This document shows, piece after piece, positions 8,673-53,913 of a stretch of 64,000 bases of DNA (position 1 is its first letter; every line of letters starts with the position of its first letter). Origin of the DNA: Takakia lepidozioides. Its lineage: Eukaryota; Plantae; Bryophyta. The DNA is taken from positions 53,320,001 to 53,384,000 of the forward strand of contig CM060734.1 in the NCBI GenBank assembly GCA_030704615.1. Direction: 5' to 3'. A model generated the notes under the pieces. That model searched no databases. It saw only the letters and a list, made by a program, of their open reading frames with translations, and was not told the origin of the DNA. Both the position numbers and the translations under genes were made by a program.

Positions 8673-8702
<30 letters not shown>
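8673..8702 (+). repeat. (GA)n microsatellite in the probable ETO1 5' leader
   Basis: Direct reading of the sequence. Confidence 0.9.
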
Positions 8703-27938: not shown

Positions 27939-30900
27939 ATGGCAGGCTTGCTGGGGGGGCATGCAACTGAGCTGCTGGGTGGGATTGTGAATGTGGGCCG
28001 TGTCCAGAAGCAGATCAGAATCACAGGCTGCCCTTTTAGTCTCATCTCTTCTGGTTTCCCAAGTTCTCAGGGGCTTGAGAGGACTGTGTTAAGGAGAAGA
28101 GGTGCACTTGATGGAGACAGGCAAGCTGTCGGAAGAGACAGAGGAGGAGGAGCGAATTTGTGCATTTGGGATTTACGAAAGGGCTTTTCAAATTCAGAAT
28201 TATGTAGAATTCGTGCCTACACTTCTACAGTAGCTGAGGTACCTTCCTGTTCCTCCCCTACAATCTGCCAATGCTGATGTTGATGTGGATATGTGTGTAA
28301 AGTGCGAAACATGTTTGAATTGCGAGCACATTCCCTGATGGATTCTGTCCTTTCATGTGCCTGTCCAACACTTCTTTCCATGTAAAACTGCGCACGTCTG
28401 TACAATGGGGTCACTGGATTAATGTCGAGCAGAGAAACAGAAAAGGGTAATCTCATCACGGGGAACGGCTTCTACCAATCTTAGGAAGCGGGTGCGATCA
28501 TACCCAGATAACGGCAGTGAGAAAAGCGGGATGGGAGGGGCCGAGTGCAGACGGAGCAGGAGCAGGAGCTGGAGAAAGCCAAATTTAACCTGTTACAATC
28601 AGTGTTGGCCACGAAGCGTGGCTCTCGGGCTTCTGAGGATCAACGTGGCATCATTGAAGAGGCCATGGTGGACTTTACTGACCGCATTTACACTGGCTCT
28701 TTGTCTGTGATCACACACTGCTGGTCTTGCAAGGAGCAAAAATGATGGGTGGGTGGTAGCAACGTGTATTTTCTGGACAAGTTAGTCACATGCCGTACTG
28801 TTTGTTATTACAAGTAGTGATTGTGTGGCAGCCATATCACAATTTAAAGTCAGCAGATCTCCTCTCCATAAGGATTGTCGAATGATCAGGCAAGTTGGGG
28901 TGCTGAGTCAGATTTTACACATATTTTTGGCCGGTGGCCCTTTGATCTGGTCCCTTGGGCACTAAGGGAAATTGGGTCCGGTAACTAGTGTAGAGACACC
29001 GGATGCCCTTTGATATTTACTCACGACAAACAGGCTAACATATATGAGAAAGCCAGGTGGCCGTGGAGAAGTACAATGCAGGCACAGCGCTGGAGCTTGA
29101 CCAGCTTCATGGCACCTGGCTGCTGCAGTACACCTCTGCCCCTGATGTCACTTCCCTCCTACAAGCTACTGAGCTGCCTTTCCTCCAGGTTCTGGAATCT
29201 TGTCCATGTCAAACCATGATTAAGTAATGAGGGATTGTGGGAAGAGAGAAAGGGGAGAGAGAGATTGTACTCATAAGACATTGTTTGCCGTAGCCTTGTG
29301 GCCATTGACCCCGCGCCCAGTTTGAACGGAACATAAAGGGACAGAAACTACCTTTGTCAGGGGCTGACGCCGGTAGTATGATTTACCTTGGAATAAACAG
29401 TTGATCCAAGATTTCCAGATATCCTCCAAAAATCCCTTCACACAAGCATCAATCTGATGTGTGTGATTTGCCCAACCAAAAGGGCCTGGGCTTTTGGCTC
29501 AGCCTCAAGATTTTCAAAGTTGTTAAACAGAGGTACAGGCACAATTTCCTTGATGGAATTGAAGAGGGTGTCCCGTTGGTGAGAGTACCCAGGACAATGA
29601 ATCAGGAAGTGAATGTTGTCTTCAGGTTGCCCACACAATGGGCACTTACAATCCCCCTTTCCTCTCTGCGACTGTTTGTTGTTCAAAGGTAGGCTACCCG
29701 CCCTGAGTTTGAATTTCAGACTAGTGCCGAGGGTGGGTAGACCCATGAGGTCATCCATGATGGCCTCACCCATGTCACAGACTGGAAACAGGTTCAGGGA
29801 AGTTTTCTGCCTAACTTCATTTTCTTCAGACAATTTCCTGGCAATAGACATGGCTTCGGAAACTTCAGCTTCTAAGCCAGATTTATCCAGCAGGGTCATG
29901 GCTAGAGGACTAAGATTCAGATTCTTGAAAATCTCTTCTACCCTTTTCCGCCAGGATTTAGCCTGTTTGACAGGGCGGTCCTGCTTCCAAGCTATAGAGT
30001 CGATTAACTTAGGATATCCGGTATTAGCCATACGTTGCAGCTGACCCCACCATCTGATTTTGAATTCATCGTGTCGGGAGCTTAAGGGAGGAATGCCAAA
30101 CCCACCCTGAACATCCACATTAGCTGTTTTGGAGCATGCTGACATGCACTCCTTGAGCACCCCGACTTGGATGGATTCAAGAGACTTAGCCTGGTTGGAG
30201 TTATCAACCCATACAGCAGATGCATACTCCAAGGCCGGCCTGATAACGCGGCAAAGCATGGTTTTTTTGACTTCAGAGTTGATCCCTCTGCAGTGGAAAA
30301 ATTTAGTGAGACCCAGCGCTTTGCGTTTGCCAGATTGAACCACTCTTTGAATATGTGCTTCCCAATTACAGTTGGAAGAAAACTCAACGCCAAGATAGGT
30401 GTAGGAGGGGAGAACAGCGATCCACTTCCCCACTGCCACTTGAGATCGCCTCCTCCTTCCCCCCGGTCGTTGAATGCCACCACTGTGCATTTACTGACAT
30501 TGGCCTCTAGCCCCGAAAGATCAAAATATCTCTTCGCGCAATCTATCAGCCCCTGGAGGTTGGAAGGAGTCTCCCCTATGCCTGCGAAGTCATCCGCAAA
30601 CATAAGGGCTGGTATGGTGGCATCACCCACCCTTAACCCAAATCCCTCACTTTCCACATCCTCCAGTAGTTGATTGATGAAAACATTGGAGAGCAGAGGG
30701 GAGAGGGTACATCCTTGAGCTACACCTTGGTCTATGTCAAAGAAAGTAGACTTCTGTCCATTAACAGTGACACAGCTTTTAGTGTGAGCATACAAGTTAT
30801 GGACCACTCTCCACATCTTTCCCTTGATCCCGGAAGACCAGAGTCGGAGCCATAGACCGTCTCTCCACACAGTGTCATAGGCCTTTTTGACATCCAGGAA

Positions 30901-33900
30901 AAAGACAAAAGTAGGTTTCCCTTCTTTTTTCCTTCCCTGGATAATCTGGCTGAGTGTGAAGATATGATCCACGCAGCCCCTGTTTCGCCGAAAGCCAGCT
31001 TGGCCTTCATGGAAACAACCTCTGGACTCCAGATCAACCTCGAGACGAGTACTTATAACTCTGCAGAATATCTTGCCAATTGCATTAAGAAGCGTGATGC
31101 CCCGATAGTTACCCGGCTCTTCTCTGTCACCTTTCTTATATAAATTGACAATGACCCCCTGCCGCCAGCGAAAGGGGGTAATTTCAGTCCTCCATATAAG
31201 GTTAAAGAGAAGAACAAGGGCCTCTATCATAGGGTCACATCATAAGCTCATTGACAATGCCATCAGGGCCACCAGCTTTGTATCCGTTTAGATGCTCAAT
31301 TGCTTCCGCAATCTCAGAGGAACTAATGGGAGCGTTATAACCCTTTGAAATATACTCCAGTTCATCAGGGCTGTCTTGAATCATAGTTCTTTCTACTGTG
31401 TCATTCCATTCTTCAGAAAACCCCTCGCTGCTAGAACTAGAATTTCTGCCAAGTGTACTGTAGTGGGTTTCAAAGGTGTTGACAATGTCAGCCGTTGAAG
31501 TCACCACTGCACCCTTAGGGGTCCTCAGCGCTTGTACTTGCTGACAATTTTTCGGCTTGTACAGACGTTGAAGGGCCAACCAGAATTTCTTGTCATTACC
31601 ACCGTGGTGGTTTGAGTTTATTTCCCCGTATAACTTATCCCAATATAGTTTCTTCTGAGACCTTACAAGCTGATTGATATCTTTGCGGAGCTGGTAGTAC
31701 CTAACCCAAAGGTCATTATTGACTTTCATTCTGCAGCACTCTCATTGGTCCACCAGTTAACAGCTCTACCGCACACAATTAGTTTCCTCCCAATGATCTT
31801 TTCAGCCACAGAAGAGACGAAACTCTCCCAAGAGTCCACCGCTCTTTTGACTTCATTTCTTGCATTGCCAGCGCAAGATTGAAGGTCTTGGAGCGAATGG
31901 ACAAAGTTGGGCAGAGCCTCTTGCAAGGCCTGGACATACTCAGCCTTGACCTCTTCATTTTGGAATTTTTCAATGCGCCACTTCTGGATCGAACGTTTCA
32001 CAGATCTCTTGGTGTTGGGGAAACACCTTTTGATCTCAGTCCAAACCAGAAAGTGGTTAGAGGTACCAATATCAGTTCTGTCAATTAACACATTGGCACA
32101 CTGGGGAAACAGATTCTTGTCCACTATGATATAATCCACAATGGATCGTTCCCCAGTTTGGGCTTTCTCACGGGTCCACTGCATCGGGTCACCTTTTGAC
32201 CTATTGTTCAGGGTCGAAAGCTGAAGCTCTTCCAGACAGTTAATTAACCGTCTTCCATTAGAGTTCAGCTCGTCCTCACCAAAAGGTCCGATGATATCAT
32301 CCTGGTGAAGACCTTTACCCACCCGGGCATTGAAGTCACCCAATAAGACCACCTGATCCTTGGCAAGGAACTTAGCACAGTCCAGCTTTACGTCTTCGAA
32401 GGCTTTATCTGCGTCAGCACCAAGTAGCCTTGTAGCCATTGACATGCACATGTGGGTTCTTGCAGCCATAAGTCTGAAGCGTTGAGTTTTGTTTTTGTAA
32501 AATTGCTTTGACCTCTACAGAAAGCCTGGATGTAGAAATTTTCAAGAATGCGGGTGGATCAGGTTGGACAAGTATACCAAAGGTTTGACTGCCGTGGAAA
32601 AACTGATGGTGGGAGCGTTCAAAACATTGTCCGATGGAGTATTTCAGGCCTCTTGCAGGTAATTGCTGTTCTTCAAGGACTAGCATGCTGTTTATACTGA
32701 AATGTGGCCCCCAGATCAGAGCGTTGTTTTGCCCCATAGCTTTTAAAGTTCTGTAGCTATCAATCTAGAATGGTGAAAGTGGATTACCACGCAGCACAAT
32801 TTGACTTTTGCAATGAGCTTCTGAGATATTTTCTGTGGATGCTCGTGACTTCCAGTTTTGACATCAACTTTTGCCACATACTTCATATGAGCCTATAGGT
32901 GGGCCGGCCGTTGTTATACTGATTCCCAACGTGCCTCAGGATTTGTTGACTGATATTATAGTGATGCCTGGGCTGTAGGCTGTAACCCATCATGGTCATA
33001 TGGGTCTTCTCTTGCTTGAATCATTTTGTGTCAGTCCCCTGGCTGACCAAACCTACTCTCCCCTTAGATGAATTTCCCTTCCTCTTAACCACAATCCTTG
33101 GTCCGTGTTCGGGATTGAACTTGCAGGCTAGCTGCTGCTGATGAATAGGGTTGCTATGGTGCTAAGATTCAAATTGCTGTCATGCGCCTCTCTTACTACT
33201 TGCCTGTCAGGATTTGGTCTTTAGTTCTAGCAGAGTCTATTGATCAAGTATAGCTCCTTTAGTTCTGTTTATATGTATACATTATGCTACTATGGCGAGA
33301 GTGCATATGATGCATTGCTGGTCAGATTGAAACTGCTGTGCAAGTTAGCTAAGCTCTAAAAATTGTGACTCGTCAGTTGTACTAATTTGCAGTATATATA
33401 TTACTACTGGTGCAGGAGACTGAGGGAGCAACACTCACTGTGACAGCCCAGTTCTTTGTTGCGAGCCCACGCAGCATAGTTCTCCTTTTTGAAGAGGTAT
33501 GTCGAGCTAGATATGACTATTCTTTGTGCCTATACAGTTGACAACACACTTGAGAACAAAATCTCTTCCAACTCTGTTTTGGAGAACTTCCACGGTGCAA
33601 GCCTCCTGTATCTGTATTGGCAATCAGTAACTTCTTATGTAGAAGCAAGAGTTTTTGACATTGCGTTGAATCCTCCATTATAGCAATGTTGCAGCAGTTC
33701 TCACTCAACGTTTGTTCCTTTCCATCCCCAGTGTGGGATTCTTGAGAAGGCAATAGCAAGCATAGTACATCGTGGACACATTTCTTTGTGTCTCTCTCTC
33801 TATCACTCACACACACACAGACACAGACACTCTGCTTTCTCTCTCTCTCTATTGTCTGCCCTGTCAAACAGGCTAACTCCTGGCAGAAGAGAGTAGAAGA

Positions 33901-36900
33901 GATTCTCAAGGACCTGGACCTGGATCCGCAAGCCTTGACCCTGCTGGATAAATCTGACTTAGAGGCTGTAGTGTCCTCAGCCATGTCTGTTGCCATGAGA
34001 TTGTCTGATGAAAATGAAGTTAGGCAGAAAACTTCCCTGAACTTGTTTCCAGTCTGTGACATGGGGGAGGACATCTTGGATGACCTCAAGGGTCTACCCA
34101 CTCTCGGCACTAGACTGAAATTTAAACTAAGGGCAGGAAGCCTACCTTTGAACAGCAAACAGAAGCAGAGAGGAAAGGGAGAGTGCAATTGCCTGCTGTG
34201 TGGGCAATCTGAAGACAGTATTCACTTTCTGATACACTGTCCGGGGTTCTCTCACCAAAGAGACGCTCTCTTCAACTCTATCAAGGGAATTGTGCCTGTA
34301 CCCCTGTTTAACAACTTTGAAAGTCTCGAGGCTGAGCCAAAAGCCCAGGCCCTCCTGAGGCCTAGTTTTTGGGCAAATCACACACAGCAGATTGATGCTT
34401 GTGTGAAGGGATTTCTAGAGGATATCTGGAAAACCCGGATTGATTCTATATATGGAGGTAAGTCTTACTACCAACGTCAGCCCCTGACAGAGGTAGGTTC
34501 TGTCCCTTTTGTTCCCGCTCAAACTGGGCGCGGGGTCAATGGCCACAAGGCTACGGCAAACAACGTCTTATGAGTACAATCTATTGTCTGCTTCCCTTTG
34601 TGTTCCGCTCAAACTGGGCGCGGGTCAATGGCCACAAGGCTACGGCAAACAACGTCTTATGAGTACATTCTATTGTCTGCTTTCTCTCCCTGTCCTCTAG
34701 GAAGCCTATTGACATTGGGTGGACTTGAAACTGGAGTACATTAATGTCTCTGTGACTAAATGCCGGCCTTGTGACCTCGTGTTCTTGTTTGTTTCGACCT
34801 GAAGCGCTTTGCTTGAGGTAAGGTAGTGCATTGGATTTAGTTGGAAAGCTTGGGGCCTTTCCCTCTTTAGAATATGCCTACACGGGCCATTCCCTGCAAC
34901 TCCCTGGAGTGTGATCTCTGAATGGTAACAAGCGGACTCCTACCGCTTGGGGGCAGCCCCTCCGCCCAAATTGGGCAGTCGTATGCTCTGTCTAGCATAC
35001 TCGGCGCTTGGGCTCGGGTTGGTTCCTGTGCTTAAACTTATGGCCTGCGAAAACAATCAAAAATTTAGCTCCTATCAACATCAACACTCCTCAGGGTGAT
35101 CCCTGGGAATTGGTTGCTTATGCCAAATGTAGGGCTTCATGTGTAGTTTTTGGGGTGAATCCCAGGATGGACGATGTGTCCTTTAAAACTACATGCTCTA
35201 GCTTAGGCTTGGATTTCATGGCTAATGGTACCATCTCGAGACTTGATAACAGGGGTACGTTGAAGGTTGCAATGACCAAAAGTGCTTCTAGTAGAGTCCT
35301 GCATCAATTCAATCTCAAAGAAGTTCGTCCCTTGACTGGCTGGAGAGCGGTCTTAGACATTGGTGATTCAATGGGGCGCTCTAGGAAGACAACCAAGGGC
35401 AACAACTTCAACTTGAGAGTTTCTAATCGGTTTGATGCTCTGGATGAGGTTGAATCCAAACAGCCAGAAGGACAAGATGCCCCTAAGTGTACGGAACCTG
35501 AACGTCCTGAATCTGAAGGATTTGGTACTCTGAATGGTTTACAACTTGTATGCTCACACCAAAAGCTGTGTCACTGTTAACGGACAGAAGTCCAACTTCT
35601 TTGACATAGACCAAGGTGTAGCTCAAGGATGTACTCTCTCATCAATCAACTCCTCGAGGATGTGGAAAGTGAGGGATTTGGGTTAAGGGTGGGTGATACC
35701 ACCATACCAGCCCTTATGTTTGCGGATGACTTCGAAGGCATAGGGGAGACTCCAACCAATCTCCAGGAGTTGATTGATTGCGCGAAGAGATACTTTGATC
35801 TTTGGGGGCTAGAGGCTAATGTCAGCAAATGTGCAGTGGTAGCATTCAACGACAGAGGAGAGGGAGGAAGTGATCTTAAGTGGCAGTGGGGTAGTCAAGA
35901 GATCCCGGTCCTCCCTTCCTACACTTACCTGGGCGTTGAGTTCTCCTCCAATTGTAATTGGGATGCACATATCCGGAAAGTTGTGCAAAGCTCTGGGGCT
36001 CACTAAATTTTTCCACTGCAGAGGGGTCAACTCTGAGGTTAAGAAAACCATGCTTTGTCGCGTTATTAGACCTGCCTTGGAGTACGGATCTGCTATATGG
36101 GTTGATAACTCCAACCAGGGTAAGTCTCTAGAATCCATTCAAGTGGGGGTGCTTAAGGAGTGTATGTCAGCATGCTCCAAAACAGCCAATGTGGCTGTTC
36201 GGGGTGAGTTTGGCATTCCGTCCTTAAGCTCCCGACGAGATGAATTCAAGGTCAGATGGTGGGGTCAGCTGCAACATATGCCCAACACCAGATATCCTAA
36301 GTTAATCGACTCTATATCTTGGAAACAGGACCGCCCTGTCAAACAGGCTAAGTCCTGGCAGAAGAGAGTAGAAGAGATCCTCAAGGACCTGGACCTGGAT
36401 CCGCAAGTCTTGACCCTGCTGGATAAATCTGACTTAGAGGCTGTAGTGTCCTCAGCCATGTCTGTTGCCATGAGATTGTCTGATGAAAATGAAGTTAGGC
36501 AGAAAACTTCCCTGAACTTGTTTCCAGTCAGTGACATGGGGGAGGACATCTTGGATGACCTCAAGGGTCTACCCACTCTCGGCACTAGACTGAAATTTAA
36601 ACTCAGGGCAGGAAGCCTACCTTTGAACAGCAAACAGAAGCAGAGAGGAAAGGGAGAGTGCAATTGCCCGTTGTGTGGGCAATCTGAAGACAGTATTCAT
36701 TTTCTGATACACTGTCCGGGGTTCTCTCACCAAAGAGACGCTCTCTTCAAATCTATTAAGGGTATTGTGCCTGTACCCCTGTTTACCAACTTTGAAAGTC
36801 TCGAGGCTGAGCCAAAAGCCCAGGCCCTCCTGAGGCCTAGTTTTTGGGCAAATCACACACAGCAGATTGATGCTTGTGTGAAGGGATTTCTAGAGGATAT

Positions 36901-38077
36901 CTGGAAAACCCGGATTGATTCTATATATGGAGGTAAGTCTTACTACCAACGTCAGCCCCTGACAGAGGTAGGTTCTGTCCCTTTTGTTCCCGCTCAAACT
37001 GGGCGCGGGGTCAATGGCCACAAGGCTACGGCAAACAACGTCTTATGAGTACTGCTTTCTTTGGGCTGGTTCTGACATGAGTAAGATGTGCTGGGCAACA
37101 GGCAAGAGTTGGAGAGGTACGTATCAGTGATGTTTTACAGGGGTGGCTGGCACCTGCAGTTTTACCACGAACCTTCTTCAGCATGCAGGTAGATTACACT
37201 GAATTTATGGGAAACGTTGTTTGTTCATGGTTTTAAAGTCAGTGGGGTGGTTACTGTTATGTAGTTGAATTGTCTCCTTTTTTCGGCAAAGCGAACAGAG
37301 GCCCTGTAAATCATATTAAAAAAAGCGAGGTTGTCTCCTCTTGGATTGACTCTCTAATTGATGAGATAGCATTCTTTCTGGTTTGCTTCCTCTTCCTTGA
37401 GGTTTCATCTTGGTGCCTTTGTTTTCATTTACATGTCCATGGCTCTGCCATGTGTATGCAGAGTTATGTATATTTGCATCTCAGGTTCTACAAGGGTTTA
37501 GATCCTGCTTGTTTCACGGAGTTCAGTGTCTTAACTGGAGCACCTGACACACGAGTTATTTCTGAATTTTGCGTAGTGCCAGTGATAGTTGCATGTGTGT
37601 CCTCTTATTCAAGTGAAGGAGAGACTCCTATGGGTCAAACTAGGTGCTAGCAGGTCTGTCTCTCTTTTGGAATTGTTGACGATGCTGCTGTTGTTGGATG
37701 CGTAAGACATAGTGTGGTTCAAGTTGATCCATATCTGCAGGTTTCCTATTTATGATGTCATGCAGGTTCTACAGTTTCTACGCAGCCTGGAGGTGCGTGT
37801 TCCACTGGGTGGACAAGCAATAACAGAAGAATCTCGTAGGAGGTATAATATCTGAAGATGCTTTCTATGATCTGTATGTTTGTGGGAGTTAAAGCAGTTA
37901 TGGTTGTGTCCAAGCATCCTACAATTCTGGTGGCTTTTGTGGTTTTGTAGGGCTCCTATTGGACTGCGCTATTACCTCACGTTTCTGGACAATGACATGC
38001 TTTTGGGACGTGCTCTTGGTAGTGGCGGTATGTTTGTCTTCAGCCGAACACAGCCACTCCAGATTCCACAGTTGTGA
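27939..38077 (+). CDS. Plastid-lipid-associated protein / fibrillin (PAP10/FBN8-like). Exons ~27939-28237, 28551-28667, 29057-29188, 32563-32657, 33416-33496, 37102-37187, 37767-37842, 37951-38077
   Basis: Spliced product includes KRGSRASEDQRGIIEEAM, LHGTWLLQYTSAPDV, VGQVYQRFDC, EGATLTVTAQF, LAPAVLPRTFFSMQ and YYLTFLDNDMLLGRALGSGGMFVFSRTQPL. Introns 3 and 5 carry LINEs. Confidence 0.9.
29264..32423 (-). mobile_element. Non-LTR retrotransposon (APE-RT-CCHC; RTE-X/L2-like), 5'-truncated, frameshifted, older subfamily
   Basis: APE motifs LGDFNARVG, SIVDYIIV, SNHFLV. RT motifs YRGITLL, QAGFR, LDVKKAYDTV, GVAQGCTLSP, FADD. C-terminal CPLCGQPEDNIHFLIHC. The 3' end TTATGAGTACAAT abuts (CT)n. Confidence 0.93.
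33858..34669 (+). mobile_element. 3' fragment of the same LINE (33858-34580) plus a second short tail (34592-34669)
   Basis: Near-identical to the 3' part of 35545-37052. CTATTGTCTGC occurs at 33849, 34581 and 34670, consistent with target-site duplications. Confidence 0.92.
34690..37052 (+). mobile_element. Internally deleted LINE copy: putative 5' UTR and ORF1-like part (35008-35545) joined to the 3' half of RT and the zinc finger
   Basis: ORF1-like segment containing VSNRFDAL. Sequence switches abruptly at ~35545 to RT sequence homologous to 30790. TGCTTTCT occurs on both flanks (34678, 37053). Confidence 0.85.
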
Positions 38078-38861
38078 GTCTGAAGGCTTCAGATGGCAGT
38101 AATAGCCAGTAGGGTGCTTATCTACTTGACAAGCATAGTAGAACTGATAGATCAGTGGAAACTGCTGCTCTAAGTGCATCCTAAGAGTAGAGAAGAGTTG
38201 GGTCTTCTAACCACGTGTCACCAAAGAGCGGTGAAGCTCTGCAAATGATGTCTTGGCCTACACATATATGTAGCATGTACAATGGCCAGCTCTAGTAGTC
38301 TAGAGATCAGGATTTGTGTAGGGTCCCTCTGTACCTTCTTGGGTTACTGCAAAAAGCTTCTATGTCATGGTAAATGGAAATGGATGGTAACATTCAAATC
38401 CATGGATCAAAGTCTGCAGCTGATCATGGTTAGAGTTGACTGGGGGAGGCCGATTTGACCGATAGTTGAATAGTCAGGATGTGTCGCCTGGGATTCTGCA
38501 TGAGCATAGATATTCTTTAACATGAGATCTGCAACCAAAGGGTCAATGCATTGAGTGCCAGCTTGGATTTCACTTTGTCAAGTTGCTGCAAGTTCTTTAC
38601 TGGTGGTTTCACTCAATCTGATCACACTGCAAAAACATTATTCTCCAAGATCACTCTACCAGTTAGTACTAGTTCTTAAGAAGTGGGTACTTGATGAGAA
38701 GCCACTAAGTATTCCTCAAATGGGCTCTCTTGCTTTGGCAAAACATAAGAGGAAGGGAGACTAAGAGAGCATGACTCAGCACAACATACCAATAGGAGCC
38801 TTAAGGTCCTTTGACCACATTTTCTCCATTGACTTCAACATGATGCATAGTCCTCTCTGGG

Positions 38862-38938
38862 AACTTTTATCTGTTGAGCATCAGCCCTTCCACTTGGCAC
38901 TGCCGGATCACTAAGGCTGACTTTTGTCCCTGCTCGAC
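38862..38938 (-). pseudogene. rrn23: Organellar, most likely plastid, 23S rRNA fragment (NUPT), ~80 bp
   Basis: AACTTTTATCTGTTGAGCATCAGCCCTTCCACTTGGCACTGCCGGATCACTAAGGCTGACTTTTGTCCCTGCTCGAC matches, from memory, the reverse complement of 23S rRNA domain V. Most differences are C>T at CG sites. Confidence 0.8.
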
Positions 38939-39709
38939 CTACAAGATGAAGAGAGGTAACAAAGCAAGCTCCAAATAAAGATAGAAGGATGCCACTTCTA
39001 GACTTAAGTGGAAGAACGAGTTGCATATAACAATAAAAGATTTAATAGTTTATCTTTATATTTTAATCTTTTTTTAAGTTATTTTTAGTATTCATCTTTT
39101 TAGTCATAACCTAAACTTATTAGAATCATTAAAAGTTATATTACTGTACGAATTAAATCAACACATATTTATTATTAAAAAAATATTTATTCAAAATTTA
39201 ACTTTTATACAACCAGTCACTTGTAACTACACAATGCTCTTAACAATCAAGTATGTTATATATATATATATATATATATTCAAAGATCTATCACACAACA
39301 TTCAGTCTCACTTTCATTTTCTAAACATCTAAAGATCGGACATGTAACAATCTGATTCTAAGTATTTCAATTTATTTTTTCTTTCTACTGTAATTAATTA
39401 AGAGAGTCGGACTATAGGCAACATTGTCAAAAACTGCGGAAGATGTACAGAAAAGTTGGAAGAGGCTAAGTGAAATCATGAGAGACTTGAAAACTCTAAA
39501 AGAAAAGAATATTTCCTAAGGGAAATAGAAAAAATATAAACTACTATAATAAATGTATATTTATGAATCACATATACTATTTACTGGTATGTACCGTCAA
39601 AATTGGTACGTTGTCATCATTTATTATAATTAAAACAAAACATGACAACCTTTTTTGGAAATAAACCTTTACGTGTTAATACCTATGTTTTTAAAAAAAA
39701 TAGTCAAAT

Positions 39710-40455: not shown

Positions 40456-40779
40456 TATATATATATATATATATATACTATAATAAATGTATCAACTTTG
40501 ATCATTACCTTTAAGAATCATGTATACTATTTATTGGTACGTACCGACAAAATTTATAGGTGACACCATTTATTACAAATTAAACAAGATTTTGTCCTCG
40601 ATAGACGTTCATACAACTATTTGTAATGCACCGACATCCATTTTTAAATAAACCTTCATGATTATTACCTATTCAAAAAGTGTGTGGGATAAGGTTAATA
40701 AATAGCAACTTTTCATTCTGTTTTCATCCAATTATTTTATTTTTCATTCAATCTTTTTAGACTGTACCTCATTTTTCCC

Positions 40780-42320: not shown

Positions 42321-42647
42321 TTTAAAATCTATATTATTTATATAAATAAACATACTAAAATATTTATTTAAAAGAACTAAAATTATAATGTATTTATTTA
42401 AAATAATGATGTATATTATATATATTATCAATTTATGTCATGCTTTCAATGTCAGATTCATCATTCCAATTTAAATCTAATCAATCAAGTATAAATATAA
42501 ATCAATATATAATCTATAATGTATAACTAGGGTAGCTTGCGCCGTTGGCCGAAGTGTCCAATGTCATCTAAGTCCAAGTGCATCAAGAGCGGCTTAGAGC
42601 GGCTCTAAGGGATCCTTATAGCGAATGTAAATAGCAATTTGTTTCTT

Positions 42648-43731
42648 TTTAGGATGCCAGTGCCAAGTTTTTGTTTCTCGGCAAGACAGAAGGCCACGTC
42701 GACAAGTTCTGGCTAAACCCTAATATATTTTAGCCAAAAAATCACATTATTTTTAGCCAAATAACTATATTGTTAATAGTTGAATTATTGAAGAGTTAAA
42801 TCTCAAAGGGTGCCATATGGCCTCAAGAGTCAACCATTTATTTTCTTACTCTAACTAATACTTAGATCGAATGTAAATAGCAAATTAGTTTTTTCTGTTT
42901 TACCACTCTAAAACACCGCGGCTCTAAAGGATTCTTAAACCAACAGTCAATAGCTCAGTTGATAAAGTGCACTGAGTGCCATCCGGATGACCCTGGGTCA
43001 AATCCTGCTACTTGACGGGTGTTGCGCGGTGTCGCATCTCCTTACGGCGAGGTTACTGAGAGGTTATTTTCTCCTCTCTCTATCGATTTGTGAGCTGTCG
43101 CTCCCAGGTGTTTCCCTTTAAAAAAAAATAAAAAAAATAAAAAAATCTTAGAGCGAATATAAATAGCAATTTAGCTTTTTCTGTTTTCCCGCTGTTAGAG
43201 CGGCGTAGAGCGGCTCTATTAATCCTTAGAACGAATGTAAATAGCAATTTAGCTTGTTCTATTTTCCCAATCTAACAAATCCTCACATTGGCTCTAAGGA
43301 TATTAAGGGATCGTTAGAATAAATGTAAAAAATATGTTAAGGTTTATCTTCTTCGTCATGGTTGACCGATTTGTTTTCCCGCTCTATGAAATCCTTAGAG
43401 CGGCTTAGAACGCTATAAGGGATCCTTACAACAAACGTAAATAAAAATTTAGTTTTTTATTATTCCAATTTAAGAGATCCTTACATTGGCTCTAAGGGAT
43501 CATTAGAATAAATGTAAAAAATATGTTAGGGTTTTTCTTCTTGGTCATGGTTGACTCTTGAAGCCATATGGCACCCTTTGAGATTTAACTCTTCAATAAT
43601 TTAACTATTAACAATATATTTTTTTGGCTAAAAATAATGTGATTTTTTGGCTAAAATATATTAGGGTTTAGCCAGAACTTGTCGACGTGGCCTTCTGTCA
43701 ACAAAAACGTGGCACTAGCTGGCATCCTAAA
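42648..43731. mobile_element. Non-autonomous long-TIR element (MULE/foldback MITE-like) with ~185-bp TIRs
   Basis: 42651-42836 is the reverse complement of ~43548-43729. Internal ~70-bp tandem units (GCGGCTCTAAGGGATCCTTAGAGCGAATGTAAATAGCAATT). No clear TSD. Confidence 0.75.
42938..43145 (+). mobile_element. tRNA-derived SINE with A-rich tail
   Basis: Box A TAGCTCAGTTG (42951), box B GGGTCAAATCC (42995), body, then A-rich tail. It interrupts a host repeat unit with TCTTA on both sides. A second copy is at 16325-16440. Confidence 0.82.
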
Positions 43732-43799
43732 GACATGCTGCACAAATCATGAACTGACACTTCAACCGCTGCAGCCATTCAAGGTCTCAAACTTCCACG

Positions 43800-44700
43800 A
43801 TCATTGCCATCCCCTCATAGCATCAAAGCGTCCCTGTATGCTGACGACACTGTGATAACTCGTCTGCTTCCAATGTTTCTGCCTCCCTGCAGGCTCTCTG
43901 GACTCGTTTTGTCATGCATCGAGGCTCAAGGTGAATTGGTCTAAGTCTGTTGCTATTCTTTCTAAGCTGTTTCCGCAGGCCTCTGTTTCGCACATTGCTC
44001 CCTGGGATCACGAGCTAGGTCTTCGTTGGCTTCAACAAGGGCAAGCTCATAATCTTCTTGGTCATCTGTTGGGTCACGATCTGACAGACCAACAGCGCTG
44101 TGAGGCGGTCATTTAACAGGAAGCTGAGCTACTGGAGCTCTCTCAATCTGTCCATCGCGGGAAGGGCTCTCATTGTCAATCAGGTGCTCTTGGCTTCCGT
44201 CTGGTTTACTGCCTCTGTCCGGTTCCCGGGTTCTGTCATTATTAGTCAGATCAAATCTTTGGTGAGGAGCTTTCTTTGGGGAGCCACCCCAACTTCCCCT
44301 TCCCGGAGGGCTCTTGTGAGCTGGTCCCATATTACCCAAAAAAGAAATTTTGTGGTTTGGGTATCATAGATCCGTTCGCGCACATTATCTCCCTGGCCAA
44401 ATTGGTTCCCAGGATGCTTACGCATCTTTCTTCTCCTTGGAGCTTAATGGTTAGAAGTCACGTCCTCAACGCATGCCCTATGTCTAGTCCGTGGCCACAA
44501 TCTATAAGATGGATAGTCCAGGGTGCCAGGACATGATCTAGAGCCAAATCCCTTGGCTCCAAGGCCTGGCAAAGAGCAGCCCTGCTTCCCACAAGCTCCC
44601 TGCAGTGTCTTTCTTGGGTTACTATTTTTTGAAAAAGTCAGACTATGGCACTGGCGTGTAAGGGTACCTAATCTCTGAGTAGTTAAAGCTGGGTTAGGGT
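43800..44700 (+). mobile_element. Degraded L1-clade retrotransposon RT fragment
   Basis: LYADDT, GLKVNWSKS, LSIAGRALIVNQVL, RSFLWG and GLGIIDP read across frameshifts. Confidence 0.85.
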
Positions 44701-45123
44701 AAGAGCAACCTTGTTTTATGATCACAAGGGAAGGTTGCTCTACAGGGGAACCGACTAGCCCAGACAGATCTCCAGCTTACAATAGCAATGGAAGAAGGAG
44801 CATAGTTCACTTCCTGGTCTATGCATATTCAACCACTCCTAAGCCTCGATCCATCAATTCACTAGGCAGAGGGGTGGGTGCAGTCAATGCAGGATCGAAC
44901 AAGGCAGCAGCCAGAATTGTAGCCAATGCAGCCAGAGAGACACGTGACGTCAACAGATTGGATTGATGTCTTCTTTCTCGTGTCCCACTTGTCCTCTGGA
45001 ACTAGTCTCTTTTGCTTACTTTCCATGGGGTCTCGAGCTGTATTCTTTCAGAGCTGCCTCTGTTGCATTGGCTTGGGGAATCACGAAGCAGCTCCAACGC
45101 AGGGGTGTTTTTGAGTGTGACAG

Positions 45124-48100
45124 AATGAAATACTACAATAACTGCTTATTCCACTCAGTGCAGAAGGACTTCATTGTACAAACTGGGGACCCTACTGGCA
45201 CAGGTGTAGGTGGAGACTCCACCTACAAGTAAGACACCGTCACTTGCCTTATACCGTTGAAACATAAGTGTTATTTCAGTAAGGTCAGCACACTTATTTG
45301 TACACTTGATTCTGTAAACCCCAAATGCAAAATGCAGTCAGACTGCTACGACTTGTGTGCGACTATGTGTCACAGAAACTGAATTGCAGGTGCTGTCTGC
45401 CCAGCTTGAAGACCTGTGGGCCTTGATTGGATGGGCCTGGTTATTTTGCACATTGTCACAACCAAAATTTTCTGATAGTGTGCTTTTCTGACTGACCCAT
45501 AAGTGTTGCGTCCTATAGGTCAACAAACGAATATGCACTTCATTTATGCATATGTGGGGTGCCTGGCTTGCTTCTGTAGACCCTGTTCTTTGTAGGTCTG
45601 CCTTTGAAGTTCAATATGTGAGGTGTGCACAATTAAGCCGGCATACAAGATGCAGCAACATAGGCTGTTATGACTTGTGTGCGACTATGTGTCACACAAA
45701 TCAAATTTGCAGGTGCTGTCTGCTCGCCCTGAAGGCCTGTGGGCCATGATGGGAATGGGCCTGGTTATTCTGCACATCATTCCCTTCAAATTGTCAGTTA
45801 GTAAACTGTTCTATTCTTCTTTCTGAGTTGGTGTGGGCTGGTTCATCCTGGCTTTTCATGGCAACATGTATCACAGTTTGAGAGTTCAGTTTTGATGAGA
45901 TGTTGTAAGGCTGTGTTAATGTGTGCATGCAGATTTCTGTATGGGGAGCAGGCAAGGTTTTTCGAAAATGAGCTGCATCCAAAACTCAAGCATGACAAAG
46001 TGGGCATTGTTGCCATGGCCAGTGCTGGTGAAAATGTGAATGCATCCCAGGTACAACATCTCTCCCTCGCTCGGGGGAAAGGTACAAACACCTCTTACTT
46101 ATAAGCTAACAACCTTTGATCACTACTTTGCTGGCCAAGAGTTTCTTGAGGGGCTTAATTCTTCTCTTCCCTACCTTGGCCTTTCTTAGACAGTGCGATT
46201 TGGCAGTGTTATACTTCTGTTGGACTTGGGCGCTAGAGCAGCAGACCCCAAATCAACATTGTATTTATAGTGTAAATAATTACAACCCACTGTAGCAAGG
46301 CATTCAATTGCCTTAACCAGATTGTCGGTGGTTGTGCTCAACAGTGATGGTATTTTGGGTGATGTTCCCTTAAAAACCAGACAAGCAGTGGGTATATCAT
46401 ACCAGATGTTGGCATGCAATGGTCAATGTCTACAATGATTACGTTTTCTTTACCCTGTTTCTCCATTTGTGTTTGATGTTGTCTTGTCCTCACTGGTTGT
46501 GTTGCAGTTTTATATCACCACAAGAGCTGAACTTGACTACCTCGATGGAAAACATACGGTCAGTGTGTTGTTCCTTCTATCATCCTTTGGTGAGATGTAT
46601 TAGTGCTGAGCAGTTATTCTTTCTAGAGCAGGACTGCTTTCCTCCTTGCCAGGTAGTATGCTGACTGGGAAGTTGCAGGTGTTTGGAGAGGTAGCAGAGG
46701 GCTTGGAGACACTAATGAGGATAAATGAGGCTTTTGTGGATGAAAAATTTCGGCCATACAAAAATATTCGGTAAGTTCCTTTCAAATGGCCACTGAAATA
46801 TTAGGCTATCTGCTTTGTATTGACTTCTTAGGTTTATGTTTTGTGTAGTAACCAACCACTTCCACTTCTTTGATGTATAAATTGTACTCATAAGACGTTG
46901 TTTGCCGTAGCCTTGTGGCCATTGACCCCGCGCCCAGTTTGAGCGGGAACAAAAGGGACAGAACCTACCTCTGTCAGGGGCTGACGTTGGTAGTGTGACT
47001 TACCATCATATATAGAATTAATCCGGGTTTTCCAGATATCCTCTAGAAATCCCTTCACACAAGCATCAATCTGCTGTGTGTGGTTTGCATGAAGGGAGAG
47101 AGAGATTGTACTCATAAGACGTTGTTTGCCGTAGCCTTGTGGCCATTGACCCCGCGCCCAGTTTGAGCGGGAACAAAAGGGACAGAACCTACCTCTGTCA
47201 GGGGCTGACGTTGGTAGTAAGACTTACCTCCATATATAGAATCAATCCGGGTTTTCCAGATATCCTCTAGAAATCCCTTCACACAAGCATCAATCTGCTG
47301 TGTGTGATTTGCCCAAAAACTAGGCCTCAGGAGGGCCTGGGCTTTTGGCTCAGCCTCGAGACTTTCAAAGTTGGTAAACAGGGGTACAGGCACAATACCC
47401 TTAATAGATTTGAAGAGAGCGTCTCTTTGGTCAGAGAACCCCGGACAGTGTATCAGAAAATGAATACTGTCTTCAGATTGCCCACACAACGAGCAATTGC
47501 ACTCTCCCTTTCCTCTCTGCTTCTGTTTGCTGTTCAAAGGTAGGCTTCCTGCCCTGAGTTTAAATTTCAGTCTAGTGCCGAGAGTGGGTAGACCCTTGAG
47601 GTCATCCAAGATGTCCTCCCCCATGTCACTGACTGGAAACAAGTTCAGGGAAGTTTTCTGCCTAACTTCATTTTCATCAGACAATCTCATGGCAACAGAC
47701 ATGGCTGAGGACACTACAGCCTCTAAGTCAGATTTATCCAGCAGGGTCAAGACTTGCGGATCCAGGTCCAGGTCCTTGAGGATCTCTTCTACTCTCTTCT
47801 GCCAGGACTTAGCCTGTTTGACAGGGCGGTCCTGTTTCCAAGATATAGAGTCGATTAACTTAGGATATCTGGTGTTGGGCATATGTTGCAGCTGACCCCA
47901 CCATCTGACCTTGAATTCATCTCGTCGGGAGCTTAAGGACGGAATGCCAAACTCACCCCGAACAGCCACATTGGCTGTTTTGGAGCATGCTGACATACAC
48001 TCCTTAAGCACCCCCGCTTGAATGGATTCTAGAGACTTAGCCTGGTTGGAGTTATCAACCCATATAGCAGATCCATACTCCAAGGCAGGTCTAATAACGC

Positions 48101-51100
48101 GACAAAGCATGGTTTTCTTAACCTCAGAGTTGACCCCTCTGCAGTGGAAAAATTTAGTGAGCCCCAGAGCTTTGCCCTTGCCAGTTTGAACAACTTTCCG
48201 GATATGTGCATCCCAATTACAATTGGAGGAGAACTCAACGCCCAGGTAAGTGTAGGAAGGGAGGACCGGGATACCCCACTGCCACTTAAGATCACTTCCT
48301 CCCTCTCCTCTGTCGTTGAATGCTACCACTGCACATTTGCTGACATTAGCCTCTAGCCCCCAAAGATCAAAGTATCTCTTCGCGCAATCAATCAACTCCT
48401 GGAGATTGGTTGGAGTCTCCCCTAGGCCTGCGAAGTCATCCGCAAACATAAGGGCTGGTATGGTGGTATCACCCACCCTTAACCCAAATCCCTCACTTTC
48501 CACATCCTCGAGGAGTTGATTGATGAAAACATTGAAGAGCAGAGGGGAGAGAGTACATCCTTGAGCTACACCTTGGTCTATGTCAAAGAAGTTGGACTTC
48601 TGTCCGTTAAGGGTAGAGAGAGAGAGCTTGTCCCTCTTCTTCCCCTATATGATTGCAGTGTGATCAACCAACTCAACAATGATGGGTGAGGTCTGGAGTA
48701 GAAAGAGAGCAGATGCAAAGATGCATACCATCTCCAAAACCACTGCACGTGACTGGGCCTCCTTCCTCCGCAGCGACTTGTCAAGTCCCTCTGGTTCTAT
48801 TTGTTCATCCATAGGTACCCAATCATCTTCCAATCGAACTTCCTCACCCTGCCATTCATTTGTAAGAATGTCAAACAGGACTAATATGATCTCAATTGTA
48901 TGATATAAACCTCTCTGCTCGAAATCTACCTTGCATAAACAAGAGTAACTTGGTTCAGTTTATCCAGCCCAATAAACCCATAGCAGTAAGTCTCATTGAG
49001 CACTTCCAAGTGAATCCCTTAATTGGAAATGCTATATCCATCACCAAGATGATGCTTTGACCCAAAGTGATACATGGTCCACTGCCTGTCATGACGTCCC
49101 TACCACGTGCAGAATAATACAGAACAAGAATAACCAAAATGAATCAGTCATGGAAGATGTATTTAGCTGGTACTGCTGGTATTAGAAAAGCTTCGACTAA
49201 TAGATGCTACCATATTACATTAGTCATTGAGCCAAAAGAGGTTCTGCAAGGCAAAAGAGTCCCTCTGCTGGTGGTTTCAACGCTGGTGATTGGTCTGGAA
49301 TCATGTCAGCAAGGGAGCATTAGGTCTAGGGTTGTCTAAGATGTTTCTCCAAAATGGATTTGTCTTTGTTTTTGCTCAATACTTGCTCATTGATTGGTAC
49401 TTCCTTCCTCAGATAGCTTTCTTTCAAACGTGATCTGCCTAAAGTTAATTATGGTTTGAGTGTGCAGGAAGGTGAGCTTGAACTCATTTTTGGGCGCTTT
49501 GGCAAGGTTGTTTTGTAAGTGTAACGCAACCTGATTCAACACTTGTGCATTTATAAGAATTTGTGGCTGTTGGTCATAGGAGAGACAGCATCAGTTTGTG
49601 CAAACTCTTGTCTGTTTGCTTGGAGTCTAATGCTGGGTTGCCGCAATTGGTCAGGGCTGCCATCATACGGGACTACAAAACTGGGGATAGCTTATGTTAT
49701 GCTTTCATTGGTAAGTGGTGCACCCATCATATTACAACCGTAATACTCCTTGCCCTGGTGTCTCGCACCTACTTTAGGAGCAGTCAATTTTTTGGCAATC
49801 TCATTGTCAGGGGTTGTTTGTTGGGCTGGTTCACACAGTGCACTGCTTGTCTCTCCTGGATTCTGTATTCCCTATGTCACAAAACTGGGACTCAAAGACT
49901 GTAGCATGTAGCCTGTAGCAAAGCCATGTGACAAGATGCTTGATACAAGTCTCCAGAGTCATCCTGCGTAGGATTATGTGTTCAGCATATACCATCCCAG
50001 TTGAAAGAAAAATACTCTCAGATATCCCTGTATTATGGAGTCCTCTTACTATACCTGGTGGTTGTTACCTTGTGACTGCAGAGTTTGAGGGACAGGAAGT
50101 GTGTAAGGCTGCCTGCTTCAAGGTTTCATGTCCAGCACTCACTCTCTTGGACATAGCTCTAAGATTGGTTACAGAAGATGCACTACTTGGGTAGAAGACT
50201 GCTGCTTTGATGCTAGAACTGCTATAGTCACTCAGGTTATGTTGCAGGCTTGAAAGGTTATACATATTTGCCCATTCCCCACAAAACACCATATGTTTTA
50301 CATGCACATGCTGCTTCATGATCTTGCAGATGGACAATGTGCTGATAGATGATCGGCGCATTCATGTAGACTTCAGCCAGAGTGTGTTGCGCCTGTGGAA
50401 CCGTTATCGTCGGTTTGGCATGAAGGAGGGTGGTGCTGAAGGTCTGTTTCCTGCAGAGCCTGAAGCTGCCTGTGTGTGAATTTTTTGCTGGTATTGTCTT
50501 ATGAATATCTCAGTGACAACATGTTTGAAGAGAGAGGGAGCTTGGTCCAGAAGATTCTGAAAGTTAGGTCTGGTGTGATATGCAGGAGTGAATTTTGCAC
50601 TGGGGCAGAGAAAGGGCAAACGTTGTTTCAAATGTGGAGAGGTTGGTCATTTTGCAAAGGATTGTCCCAATGACAGCAATGATCAGAAATCTGCAGCCCC
50701 TGATCAACTCAAGTACTCTATACGAGACACAGGCGGTCAACGCAGAAGTACAGGCAGGAGGTAATCTAACGTCAATTTTGTTGAAATAATCTGCCAGAGG
50801 TAAAAGGTCTTAATGAATCTCCAATTGGTACTGTATGCATCCTCACGCTGCAGATGAGCTACCGATGCGATGAATGCAGCGATGAATGACTGTAGAGTAT
50901 ATGAGTTCCAGAGTACAGAACTGGGTTCTTTATAGGTGGTGAAATTGTGGCACTGAAAGTGCAATTCTGTTTTGTAGTTACGACATGGTATTTGAAGACG
51001 AGGAGAATGTAGGGGATGGTTCTGGCCGAACAAAGTCAGCAGACAGACAGGTCGTGCACTTCCAGTCAATGTGGCCTTGAGGGGTGATGAAGAAGACAAC

Positions 51101-51650
51101 AGGAAGAGATCACAGAAATATAAAGGAGGGCGTGAAATGCATGAACAAGGGCATCGGTCCTACACGGAGGGACAGGAGATGGGTAGTGAAAGGCTTCGAC
51201 AGGACGGTAGACGTGAGAAGGATAGTGAGACATATCGAGAAAATACAAAACAGCAGAGAGGTTCTGAGAGGGGCAATGAAAGGGAGGAATCTGAACGAAA
51301 TATATGGCATGGGAGAGTGGGGAGGTCTGGGAGAGTGCCTGAAAATGTTGGAGAAAAGGGGGAAACCAAATACTGGGAAAGAGGTGGTAAGATGGAAAGC
51401 GGTAGGCATGAGGGAGAGGGGGCCATGGGGAGAGAGACACTAGGAGTCAGCTTGGATCAAGGCCTGAGAGGGGCGTGATACAGGTAAGAGGATGCGGTCT
51501 GATGAGATAGAGGAGAAGAGGAGTAGCCAAGCTTGAGAAGGATATAGACCTTGAGCAAGGTAGAGGCAGTAGATGGGATAGTCAACAGGAACGAGACAGA
51601 CACTTGGATGAGAGGGTTTTGCCTAGAATGGCAGGCATGAGAGGGATCAG
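45124..51650 (+). pseudogene. CYP59: Cyclophilin-RRM-zinc knuckle CYP59/PPIL4-like gene, rearranged: first exon not found, internal exons inverted or lost, frameshift in the RS-rich tail
   Basis: Plus-strand exons: 45124-45228 ([16 protein letters not shown]), 45933-46050, 46508-46558, 46679-46770, 49468-49514, 49655-49710 (IIRDYKTGDSLCYAFI), 50082-50122, 50330-50441 (MDNVLIDDRRIHVDFSQSV), 50586-50760 (CFKCGEVGHFAKDC) and 50978 onward. Minus-strand exons: 48848-48729 and ~49316-49263. Confidence 0.88.
46881..48610 (-). mobile_element. LINE 3' half (47105-48610) plus a tandem short 3' fragment (46881-47087)
   Basis: 463-aa ORF near-identical to 35629-37048. The larger piece is bounded by (CT)n on both sides. 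Confidence 0.93.
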
Positions 51651-51745
51651 GGGTTCTGCCGTATTTGACCCACCATACAAAATTTGATCGGGAGTGAAGA
51701 GTCTCCTCTTCTTGCATTGAGATTCTCTGTCTTGCAGCTGCTCCC

Positions 51746-53913
51746 ATGGCGGCACTGTGTCGGGCAACCATTCTCAATGGAGGATGCCGTAGTGCTTTAC
51801 TTCTGTCGAACGCACCCTCGACATTATCAAGGAGCTCTTTGTTTGGAGTGCAGCTGTCTTTTTACGCAATGAACTCCTCGTTCGATTCTTCGGCCCTGGC
51901 TTCACCATTGATCTGCTATGCAATGGTAATTTCTGTACTTTCCGCTCCTCAAAGACCCTTTCTTAGTTGGACCCTGCGGCGTTCATGTAAGTGAACTCTA
52001 AGGATGCTAGTAAAACATGCGAAATGATGGACCTCTAAAGTTGTCTCTATGATATGTCCTTGTGCCAGACATGGTGGTCGGACGCCGCCCGACAACTGCA
52101 ACCAGATTGGCAGGTATGTTTCACATTGACCTTATATTTAAGTGCAGGCTCTTGCCCCTCTGCATATTCGATATCCTTTTGTCACTTTCTTGCCTGACAA
52201 AGTGGATGAGAATTAATTCATGTTCTACAGATCGAAACAGTCCCAGGTTAGTCGGAGGTGTTTAAGAATGGAATCCGGTTGTGAGGTTTCTAGACTCGTG
52301 ATTGGAGTTAAGTGAGTTAAGTGTACACACTCTCTCTCTCTCCTCTCTCTCTATCAAGGGAATCTATCAAGGGAATTGTGCCTGTACCCCTGTTTACCAA
52401 CTTTGAAAGCCTCGAGGCTGAGCCAAAAGCCCAGGCCCTCCTGAGGCCTAGTTTTTGGGCAAATCACACACAGCAGATTGATGCTTGTGTGAAGGGATTT
52501 CTAGAGGATATCTGGAAACCCCGGATTAATTCTATATATGAAGGTAAGTCTTACTACCAACGCCAGCCCCTGACAGAGGTAGGTTCTGTCCCTTTTGTTC
52601 CCGCTCAAACTGGCGCGGGGTCAATGGCCACAAGGCTACGGCAAACAACGTCTTATGAGTACAATCTTTCTCTCTCTCTCAATTGCTGGGCAGCTCACAC
52701 ACAGCAGATTGATGCCTGTGTGAAGGGCTTTCTAGAAGGATTCTGGAAATCAACGTAATTCCCACTACTGGAGTGAGCCCCTCACAAAGGTAGTGTCTGC
52801 TCCCTCTTGCTCCGCCCAAAAGTCCTGAAAGAGAGAACGAACTCATAAGACATTGTTTGCCACAGTGCCACAGATCCCCTGCCCAGTGAAAAAGAGATAT
52901 TTCAATCCTCAATGATTTACTCAATGGAAATTGTTCATGCTGGTTGTTCTCTACGTCAGAAAGCTCACATGGACAGAGTCCAAAAGCTGGAGGCCTTGCA
53001 AGAACGGTCACCAGCAACCACTCAAGAAATCCAAATTTCGAAAGTGAAACAGCCAACAGTTTTTGAAGACCTCAAGAAGCAGGGGGCCGAGGCACTGTTT
53101 GGTGGGGGTTTTGCCCAGGAAATGATAATTGGACGGGCTGCAATGCTTGGTTTCTTGTCAGCTATGACTACTGAAATTGAGGCAGGCTGTAGTGTATGGC
53201 AGCAGCTCTCTGTCAGGTACATCACTTCTCTTTTGTTCAGTTGAGGGGATTTCTTGTGCTCGTGCCAAATGTGGAAGTTCTAGACTCAAGAATGAGTTTA
53301 CTGGAAGTTGAGGCAGTCGTGTTGTGATATTGTAGAGCTTGAGAGCCACACTTGCGCTAGTCAACAGCAGACTGTTAAGGCAAACCTTTGAGTATTTGTA
53401 CGCATAGACATGTGGTAAAGATCCACAATCCAACTACAGAGGTAGCATGATTGGTCCCTTTCAGTTCATAAGGCGATTTTTTGTCAGGGAAACTGATGTT
53501 GTTCATGTAACTGAAAGGGAGAGAAGAGTGCTGAGAAGAGAAGGGAGATAAAAGACTGCCATTAAGGCCCAGCATGAACAAGTGTGTTCTCATTCAATTT
53601 GCACTGGCCAGTTGTGTGTTTAACTCAGACGTGTAGACAAGAGATTCTTGGCTGAAGCATGTCAGAAGAGGGGATCTAGAATTCACCTACGATTGTTGTC
53701 TTGTATGCAGGGGAGGGTTGGCGCTAATAGTGATGGGGGCAGTGTTGGCTGGATCATTAACTCCACGCATCAAGGAGAATGGACTAGACTGCTCTGCCAA
53801 TCCACTTGGACCATTCACAGCAAGAGCAGAACGCCTAAATGGTCAAGCAGCTATGGTGGGATTTTGCCCTCTTACTTGTGATTGAGACGGTCAAAGGCAG
53901 TGCGGTGTTCTGA
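51746..53913 (+). pseudogene. ELIP-like three-helix LHC-family protein. Exons 51746-51925, 52069-52113, 52960-53216, 53711-53913; frameshift near 53860
   Basis: Transit-peptide-like exon 1. LHC motifs EMIIGRAAMLGF and AERLNGQAAMVG. The expected C-terminus FALLLVIETVKGSAVF is in another frame. Confidence 0.75.
52362..52752 (+). mobile_element. LINE 3' fragments (52362-52665 and 52685-52752) within a (CT)n tract
   Basis: Same family tail GGCTACGGCAAACAACGTCTTATGAGTACAAT, flanked by (CT)n. An inverted tail relic sits at ~52840-52860. Confidence 0.9.

Follow-up and report, generated by a model that had tools for sequence, protein, structure and literature searches.

How does a long interspersed nuclear element (LINE) that carries no poly(A) tail pick its insertion sites, and how does it recognize its own RNA? 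A land-plant example is found in the genome of the moss Takakia lepidozioides, in a stretch of 64 kb (contig CM060734.1 of assembly GCA_030704615.1, positions 53,320,001 to 53,384,000; hereafter the window), where pieces of one LINE family lie between 29.2 and 52.9 kb, several of them next to runs of CT. An earlier note, made from the letters of this DNA only, had proposed an intron-dwelling, (CT)n-targeting family that recognizes its RNA through the 3' end of its coding sequence. The analysis described here followed up that proposal. CT tracts were present at the target before the insertion, and in the window their association with the element goes far beyond chance. The targeting of (CT)n is not strict. 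In addition, the end of the coding sequence contains a covarying hairpin, which is a putative handle by which the reverse transcriptase (RT) would find the RNA.

A LINE family with a common 3' end

At least nine pieces of the family were found by a combination of self-BLAST, sensitive BLAST and protein-level mapping. The earlier count of at least seven is thereby borne out, with the pieces G and H as additions to its list. A search for the last 32 nt of the element, with up to three mismatches allowed, gives seven occurrences in the window, where none is expected by chance. Copy A (29264 to about 32740, minus strand) is the longest and the oldest. It is about 86% identical to the remaining copies and it alone reaches the endonuclease domain. 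The copies B, B', C, D, E and F are younger, with a mutual identity of 96-98%, and every one of them is 5'-truncated. Copy B (33858-34580, plus strand) measures 723 bp and is 98% identical to C and E, and it is followed by B' (34593-34669, plus), a 77-bp piece that consists of the tail only. Copy C extends from about 35532 to 37052 (plus). On the minus strand, D (46881-47088) is a 208-bp tail copy and its neighbor E (47105-48610) retains an intact open reading frame (ORF) of 463 codons at 47112-48503. Copy F (about 52353-52665, plus) has a length of about 310 bp. Directly behind its CT tract follows G (about 52682-52820, plus), an older and diverged piece without the 3' end, and then H (52841-52861, minus), an inverted 21-nt tail fragment with CT-rich sequence next to it.

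In copy A, the Pfam domain Exo_endo_phos_2 is matched in 31726-32469 and RVT_1 (2.3e-31) in 30082-31230. The apurinic/apyrimidinic endonuclease (APE) and the RT thus lie in order on one strand and are accompanied by the C-terminal domain, with the ORF of A decayed to five pieces and its 5' part unreadable. There is no intact full-length copy within the window. The C-terminal domain contains a CCHC motif (C-x2-C-x7-H-x4-C) after the RT, of which C337, C340, H348 and C353 are invariant in eight aligned sequences. The APE-RT-CCHC layout given in the earlier note is correct on both counts, domains and motif.

The best named matches of the RT in the protein search are Ectocarpus proteins. A long stretch of one of these (P0003) and a shorter one of a second (P0002) correspond nearly letter for letter to the curated RTEX-1_Ec32 protein (PMC12477816, supplement 2), and a Cys/His motif resembling the CCHC of the window family is visible in the sequence text of RTEX-1_Ec32. 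Over 216 residues, the RT of the window shares 52% identity with P0002, versus 27% with the RT of a different Ectocarpus LINE. The solved structures of L1 ORF2p and R2 are distant matches only (L1 ORF2p with an E of 1e-21 on the RT core). Because its best RT matches are RTEX-1_Ec32-like proteins, the element is assigned to RTE-X rather than to L2, and of the previous label "RTE-X/L2-like" only the first half is kept. Judged by these identities, an RTE-X-type LINE is supported, which would make the element a new family of a known clade.

The 3' end is remarkably short. In copy E the ORF stops at TGA and is followed by the last seven nucleotides of the element, GTACAAT; the end of this ORF aligns with the ends of related proteins. 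Copies A, B, D, E and F share the identical end point and diverge directly past it, while B' ends in GTACATT and C in GTAC, without the final AAT. An A-rich tail was not found in any copy in the window. The earlier description of a stop codon TGA plus a few nucleotides, without poly(A), therefore holds, with GTACAAT in five copies and GTAC in C.

The family is very abundant in the genome. When the assembled contigs of the best DNA run (X1) were aligned to a 6-kb stretch, 38291 of them matched, nearly all on the element. The summed contig depth on the element is thousands of times that of the flanks, a figure that is not a copy number. Loose contig ends are also seen at 52820, the truncated end of G.

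Some further observations concern the copies and their relatives. The 3' end of G is missing exactly where H and its CT-rich flank start (52821-52861), which suggests that the end of G was removed by a later insertion or deletion. Run X10, labelled as a different organism (B), contains pieces of the LINE at 98.5-100% identity, within 47176-48610. Its unique flanks are nearly absent, the sole flank match being 34 nt long (50623-50656), and the X10 pieces could come from a close relative or be carry-over of a very high-copy repeat. A further LINE of this type, only distantly related, is represented by a 330-bp fragment at 2633-2961 (minus strand), with 39% amino-acid identity to the C-terminal domain and 68-78% DNA identity over 130-330 bp.

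CT tracts at the insertion sites

CT/AG tracts were counted from a length of 8 nt, which gives 22 tracts in the 64 kb. Seven of them abut junctions of the element, and each of the seven reads CT on the sense strand of the element. The six junction positions quoted in the earlier note (29255, 33840, 47095, 48615, 52330 and 52666) all proved to be real CT/AG tracts.

The order of events can be read from the flanks of B, E and F. The 5' flank of B (33838-33857, plus strand) reads (CT)5 and then ATTGTCT, passing from the (CT)n tract into the target-site duplication CTATTGTCT(GC), which recurs at 34581-34591; the 3' flank reads CTATTGTCTGC. The duplication measures 9-11 nt, begins with the last CT unit of the pre-existing tract and contains this single unit. 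Copy B' entered at the same nick, with CTATTGTCTGCT on either side. Only CT lies past the nick at the site of B and B', and upstream of the nick B' has the tail of B instead of a repeat. Copy E is preceded by (CT)6ACCC (48611-48626) and followed by (CT)4CCC (47089-47104, minus strand), so that its duplication includes the CT tract. Copy F has CT tracts on both sides, at 52330-52352 and 52666-52681. When the two sides are compared in B, E and F, the 3' tract is never longer than the 5' one, and the element therefore supplies at most one or two bases of CT. At the 3' end of A a CT tract (29255-29263, minus strand) abuts the element and the sequence stays CT-rich for about 25 nt onward, and the 5' flank of D is the CT tract that was later used by E.

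As a comparison for the association, random sites were taken, for the most part from the non-coding DNA in which the copies lie too. Of the eight 3' flanks, five begin with CT (p=5e-5). The mean pyrimidine content of the 20-nt 3' flanks (n=8) amounts to 0.76, a value that was reached by 0 of 20000 random sets. A (CT)4 within 14 nt is present in 3/8 of the 3' flanks versus 0.13% per random site. In the assembled contigs, the loose ends at the 3' junction are mixed (agreement 0.44-0.51), and their first bases are pyrimidine-rich on the element strand.

Copies of the family are also stacked. E lies in the CT tract directly before D, F in the tract before G, and B' behind B. It was considered that E+D and F+G could be one duplicated composite. 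This was rejected, as the junction sequences differ between the stacked pairs, and the pairs are therefore separate insertion events.

Pyrimidine runs recur at the ends of related elements. In the metagenomic families L002, L004 and L125, the stop codon is followed by 7, 6 and 1 nt, respectively, and then by a long (CT)n run, which measures at least 18 nt and in places exceeds 50 nt. In the curation of the Ectocarpus RTE-X elements, the termini are given as (C)n and the target duplications as C-rich, and tandem copies are recorded (PMC12477816, supplement 3). Taken together, the (CT)n of the metagenomic families and the (C)n of Ectocarpus point to a pyrimidine run at the junction as a habit of the clade. 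The P0179 sequences (L126 and L127) stop short of the element end, and the tails of L003, L128 and L129 are other or unclear.

Such findings could be produced by a truly microsatellite-specific LINE, the endonuclease of which recognizes and cuts (CT)n as proposed for Kibi, a group of (TC)n-specific fish LINEs from the Tx1 group of the L1 clade (PMC3812793); the remaining copies would then be rare accidents or have lost their flanks. The CT tracts 5' of B, E and F and 3' of A, E and F would agree with such an enzyme, as would the long (CT)n abutting L002, L004 and L125 and the stacking of copies at tracts. However, D is followed by TTATACATC and C by TGCTTTC, so that there is no (CT)n at the 3' junctions of these two copies, and the flank of D is not CT-rich. 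C lacks (CT)n in both of its flanks. Moreover, 14 of the 22 tracts in the window are unoccupied, including the longest CT/AG microsatellite, a (GA)15 at 8673-8702, which has no LINE insertion. The nick used by B' is preceded by the tail of B, the duplication of B holds one CT unit, and the RT falls outside the Tx1/L1 group to which Kibi belongs (PMC3812793). Strict recognition of this kind is unlikely for the window family. From the earlier claim of (CT)n targeting, the pre-existing tracts are retained, as B, E and F show them in their 5' flanks and in their duplications, and strictness is given up in view of C, D and the empty tracts.

A second explanation takes the (CT)n as the tail of the element itself, copied from its RNA or added by slippage as in the tails of CR1, L2 and RTE elements, with an essentially random target. 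Short repeat tails are reportedly usual in related LINE clades, and the metagenomic relatives have their long (CT)n directly behind the stop codon. This explanation is quite improbable here, because CT tracts also stand before the truncated 5' ends of B, E and F, no 3' tract exceeds its 5' counterpart in length, and B, B', C and D show just 0-2 nt of CT behind their terminus. The earlier note had itself named an element-borne tail as the finding that would speak against its proposal; in the window the CT is found on the 5' side as well. Finally, chance composition, by which introns are pyrimidine-rich and a LINE surviving only in introns would often end up beside a tract, accords with the position of every copy in non-coding parts of a gene-dense stretch but is hardly credible with 22 tracts in 64 kb, (CT)4 at 0.13% of sites, no match in the 20000 random sets and a tract strand that always agrees with the element strand.

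The coding hairpin and the proposed insertion mechanism

A hairpin with the arrangement GUC-AA-UGGCC-loop-GGCUA-C-GGC is contained in the final ~45 nt of the ORF. In copy E this conserved hairpin is located at 47128-47150 (minus strand), within the ORF and 23 nt from the end of the element. Relatives were fetched by an exhaustive search of representative proteins, a word-indexed search with the C-terminal ORF having given two matches only. They have a GGGGUC-NA-UGG region in common, 20-45 nt before their ends. In an alignment of nine 3' ends, the hairpin comprises eight base pairs with a 2-nt bulge and 97% of the cells are paired, versus 8-45% in slid controls of the same alignment. Three pairs have changes on both sides, and the covariation score is reached by 0 of 500 shuffles. 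In the outer stem, the middle pair varies between U-G, U-A, C-G and G-C.

The same nucleotides of the hairpin are translated as GVNG in the window family and as GSMA in others, that is, in two frames. Since two frames run over the same nucleotides, the conservation lies at the level of RNA or DNA and not of the protein. The suggestion that the RNA is recognized through the 3' coding sequence thus gains support from a covarying hairpin that is read in two frames, and the hairpin may well serve as the RNA handle for the RT. Kept at the nucleotide level while the frame shifts between families, it would offer a compact and testable handle for recognition by the RT.

No Rfam family matches the hairpin. 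When the JGI metagenome contigs were searched for exact occurrences of the tail, there were 0 matches. A degenerate scan of metagenomes for the hairpin core returned 120 loci, which are unrelated GC-rich chance matches, apparently bacterial, and none of them has both the continuation of the hairpin and a CT run.

Next to the hairpin, CT-rich DNA is also found in a coding context. In L001 (1320-1370) and in L002 and L004 (60-110 nt before the stop codon), it encodes a Ser/Pro-rich low-complexity protein segment just upstream of the hairpin. The window family has a T/C-rich stretch at the equivalent place (47165-47190).

The explanation that we regard as probable is that the pieces are 5'-truncated copies of a very abundant RTE-X LINE with a putative single APE-RT-CCHC protein. 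The RT would find the RNA through the small conserved hairpin in the coding sequence, 23 nt from the end, and would insert the element by target-primed reverse transcription where pyrimidine-rich DNA is nicked. In most cases the duplicated target would start with CT, often within a (CT)n run that was already there. Either a purine-ended primer on the bottom strand would pair with the last bases of the RNA, or the endonuclease would loosely prefer such sites. The insertion would duplicate the CT tract and thereby create a new landing site directly at the 5' side of the copy, at which later copies could stack head to tail: E before D, F before G and B before B'. A self-renewing CT tract of this kind would account for the head-to-tail trains. 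The family, its ends, the target duplications and the covariation of the hairpin are seen directly, while how the element primes and what the hairpin does are what we infer.

A number of points weigh against this explanation. The copies occupy about five independent target sites in the window, as stacked copies share their sites. The 3' junctions of C and D are free of (CT)n, and neither copy shows a clear target duplication. The 5' end of copy A was not found. The hairpin alignment consists of nine sequences only, two of them from the window family, and the fold energy of the 3' end by itself is no better than that of shuffled sequences (z about -1). The RTE-X placement follows from best-hit identity.

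On a wider scale, the elements might form a cross-kingdom subclade of RTE-X, spread over mosses, environmental eukaryotes and perhaps brown algae, with a coding hairpin as handle and an endonuclease tuned to pyrimidine microsatellites. This extension is tentative and, for the present, doubtful. If true, such elements would regenerate the sites at which they land and would insert preferentially into intronic polypyrimidine tracts, with consequences for the splicing of host genes.

Host introns and known systems

The earlier note had placed all pieces in introns. The plus strand carries fibrillin exons at 28.5-29.2 kb (PAP_fibrillin profile positions 2-81), and copy A begins 29 nt past the second fibrillin open frame. 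Two further plus-strand exons, one of a cyclophilin (46.6 kb) and one with a zinc knuckle (50.6 kb), fit a gene of the CYP59 type, and D and E are located between them. An ELIP-like helix is encoded at about 53.1 kb. The exons bear out an intronic position for D and E, which sit between those of CYP59, and for A, which immediately follows one of fibrillin; the remaining pieces (B, B', C, F, G and H) are only probably intronic. Neither the downstream fibrillin exons nor the upstream ELIP exons were located when Pfam was applied to ten further open frames. The open frame with the ELIP-like helix (52849-53241) starts inside H, and the real ELIP-like exon therefore begins further downstream.

The proposal that introns serve as a safe harbor is not supported. 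With respect to the host genes, four pieces are antisense (A, D, E and H) and five are sense (B, B', C, F and G), and nothing in the window points to a seeking of introns beyond target composition and survival. B and B' are situated 31 nt upstream of an apparent 3' splice site, where a polypyrimidine tract is expected. Most simply, the location in introns is a by-product of the position of CT tracts and of selection against exonic hits. For annotation, CT-flanked short tail fragments in introns of T. lepidozioides should be masked as members of this LINE family.

Two other parts of the window deserve mention. Between 38000 and 44000 lies an AT-rich block (GC content 29-36% versus about 46% elsewhere) with diverged direct and inverted repeats of 80-280 bp, which may be a decayed satellite or a cluster of other transposons. 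At 55965-57629 (plus strand), the intron-free first part of a PPR-SMR gene of the At1g18900/At1g74750 type is found. It is 52-53% identical to proteins of Ceratodon and Physcomitrium over 94% of its length, and liverwort and seed-plant proteins match its conserved third only, which fits a moss outside the lineages of those two genera.

Several known LINEs share part of these features. RTE-1 and BovB of the RTE clade reportedly have a single ORF, a very short 3' untranslated region and no poly(A). The window family is alike in the last two respects, and its ORF may be single as well. Elements of the RTE clade are, to our knowledge, without a C-terminal CCHC domain. The RT of the window is just 27% identical to that of the second Ectocarpus LINE, a non-RTE-X element of unconfirmed type that is taken here as RTE-type.

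The eel element UnaL2, of the L2 clade, is said to be of the stringent type, with a 3' stem-loop and a short repeat tail. The window family likewise lacks poly(A), shows a short simple repeat at the junction and has, close to its 3' end, a conserved hairpin that is likely a handle for the RT. With its eight pairs and the 97% of paired cells, the covarying 3' stem-loop that marks the stringent type is found here too. In UnaL2, the hairpin lies in the 3' untranslated region and the repeat belongs to the element, whereas in the window family the hairpin lies in the ORF and the repeat is largely derived from the target.

Kibi is alike in being an APE-type LINE associated with TC/CT microsatellites (PMC3812793). 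It belongs to another clade, the closest relatives of the window RT being RTE-X elements and not those of Tx1/L1. It is also repeat-specific by description, while the window family enters sites with CT only or with no repeat. In an element of the Kibi type essentially all copies would be flanked by repeats on both sides, versus (CT)4 in three of the eight 3' flanks here.

RTEX-1_Ec32 and RTEX-2_Ec32 of Ectocarpus (PMC12477816) agree with the window family in a C-terminal Cys/His motif and 52% RT identity, and they have a single endonuclease-RT protein, as the window family may have too. In both systems the ORF extends nearly to the end of the element, poly(A) is absent, and both the terminus and the target duplication contain a pyrimidine run. 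Tandem copies, a very high copy number and many intronic copies are also common to both. The run is (C)n in the alga and (CT)n or CT-rich in the moss, and the 3' hairpin is undescribed in the algal elements. No new kind of biology is opened by the moss family; the new detail that it adds to this comparison is the frame-independent coding hairpin.

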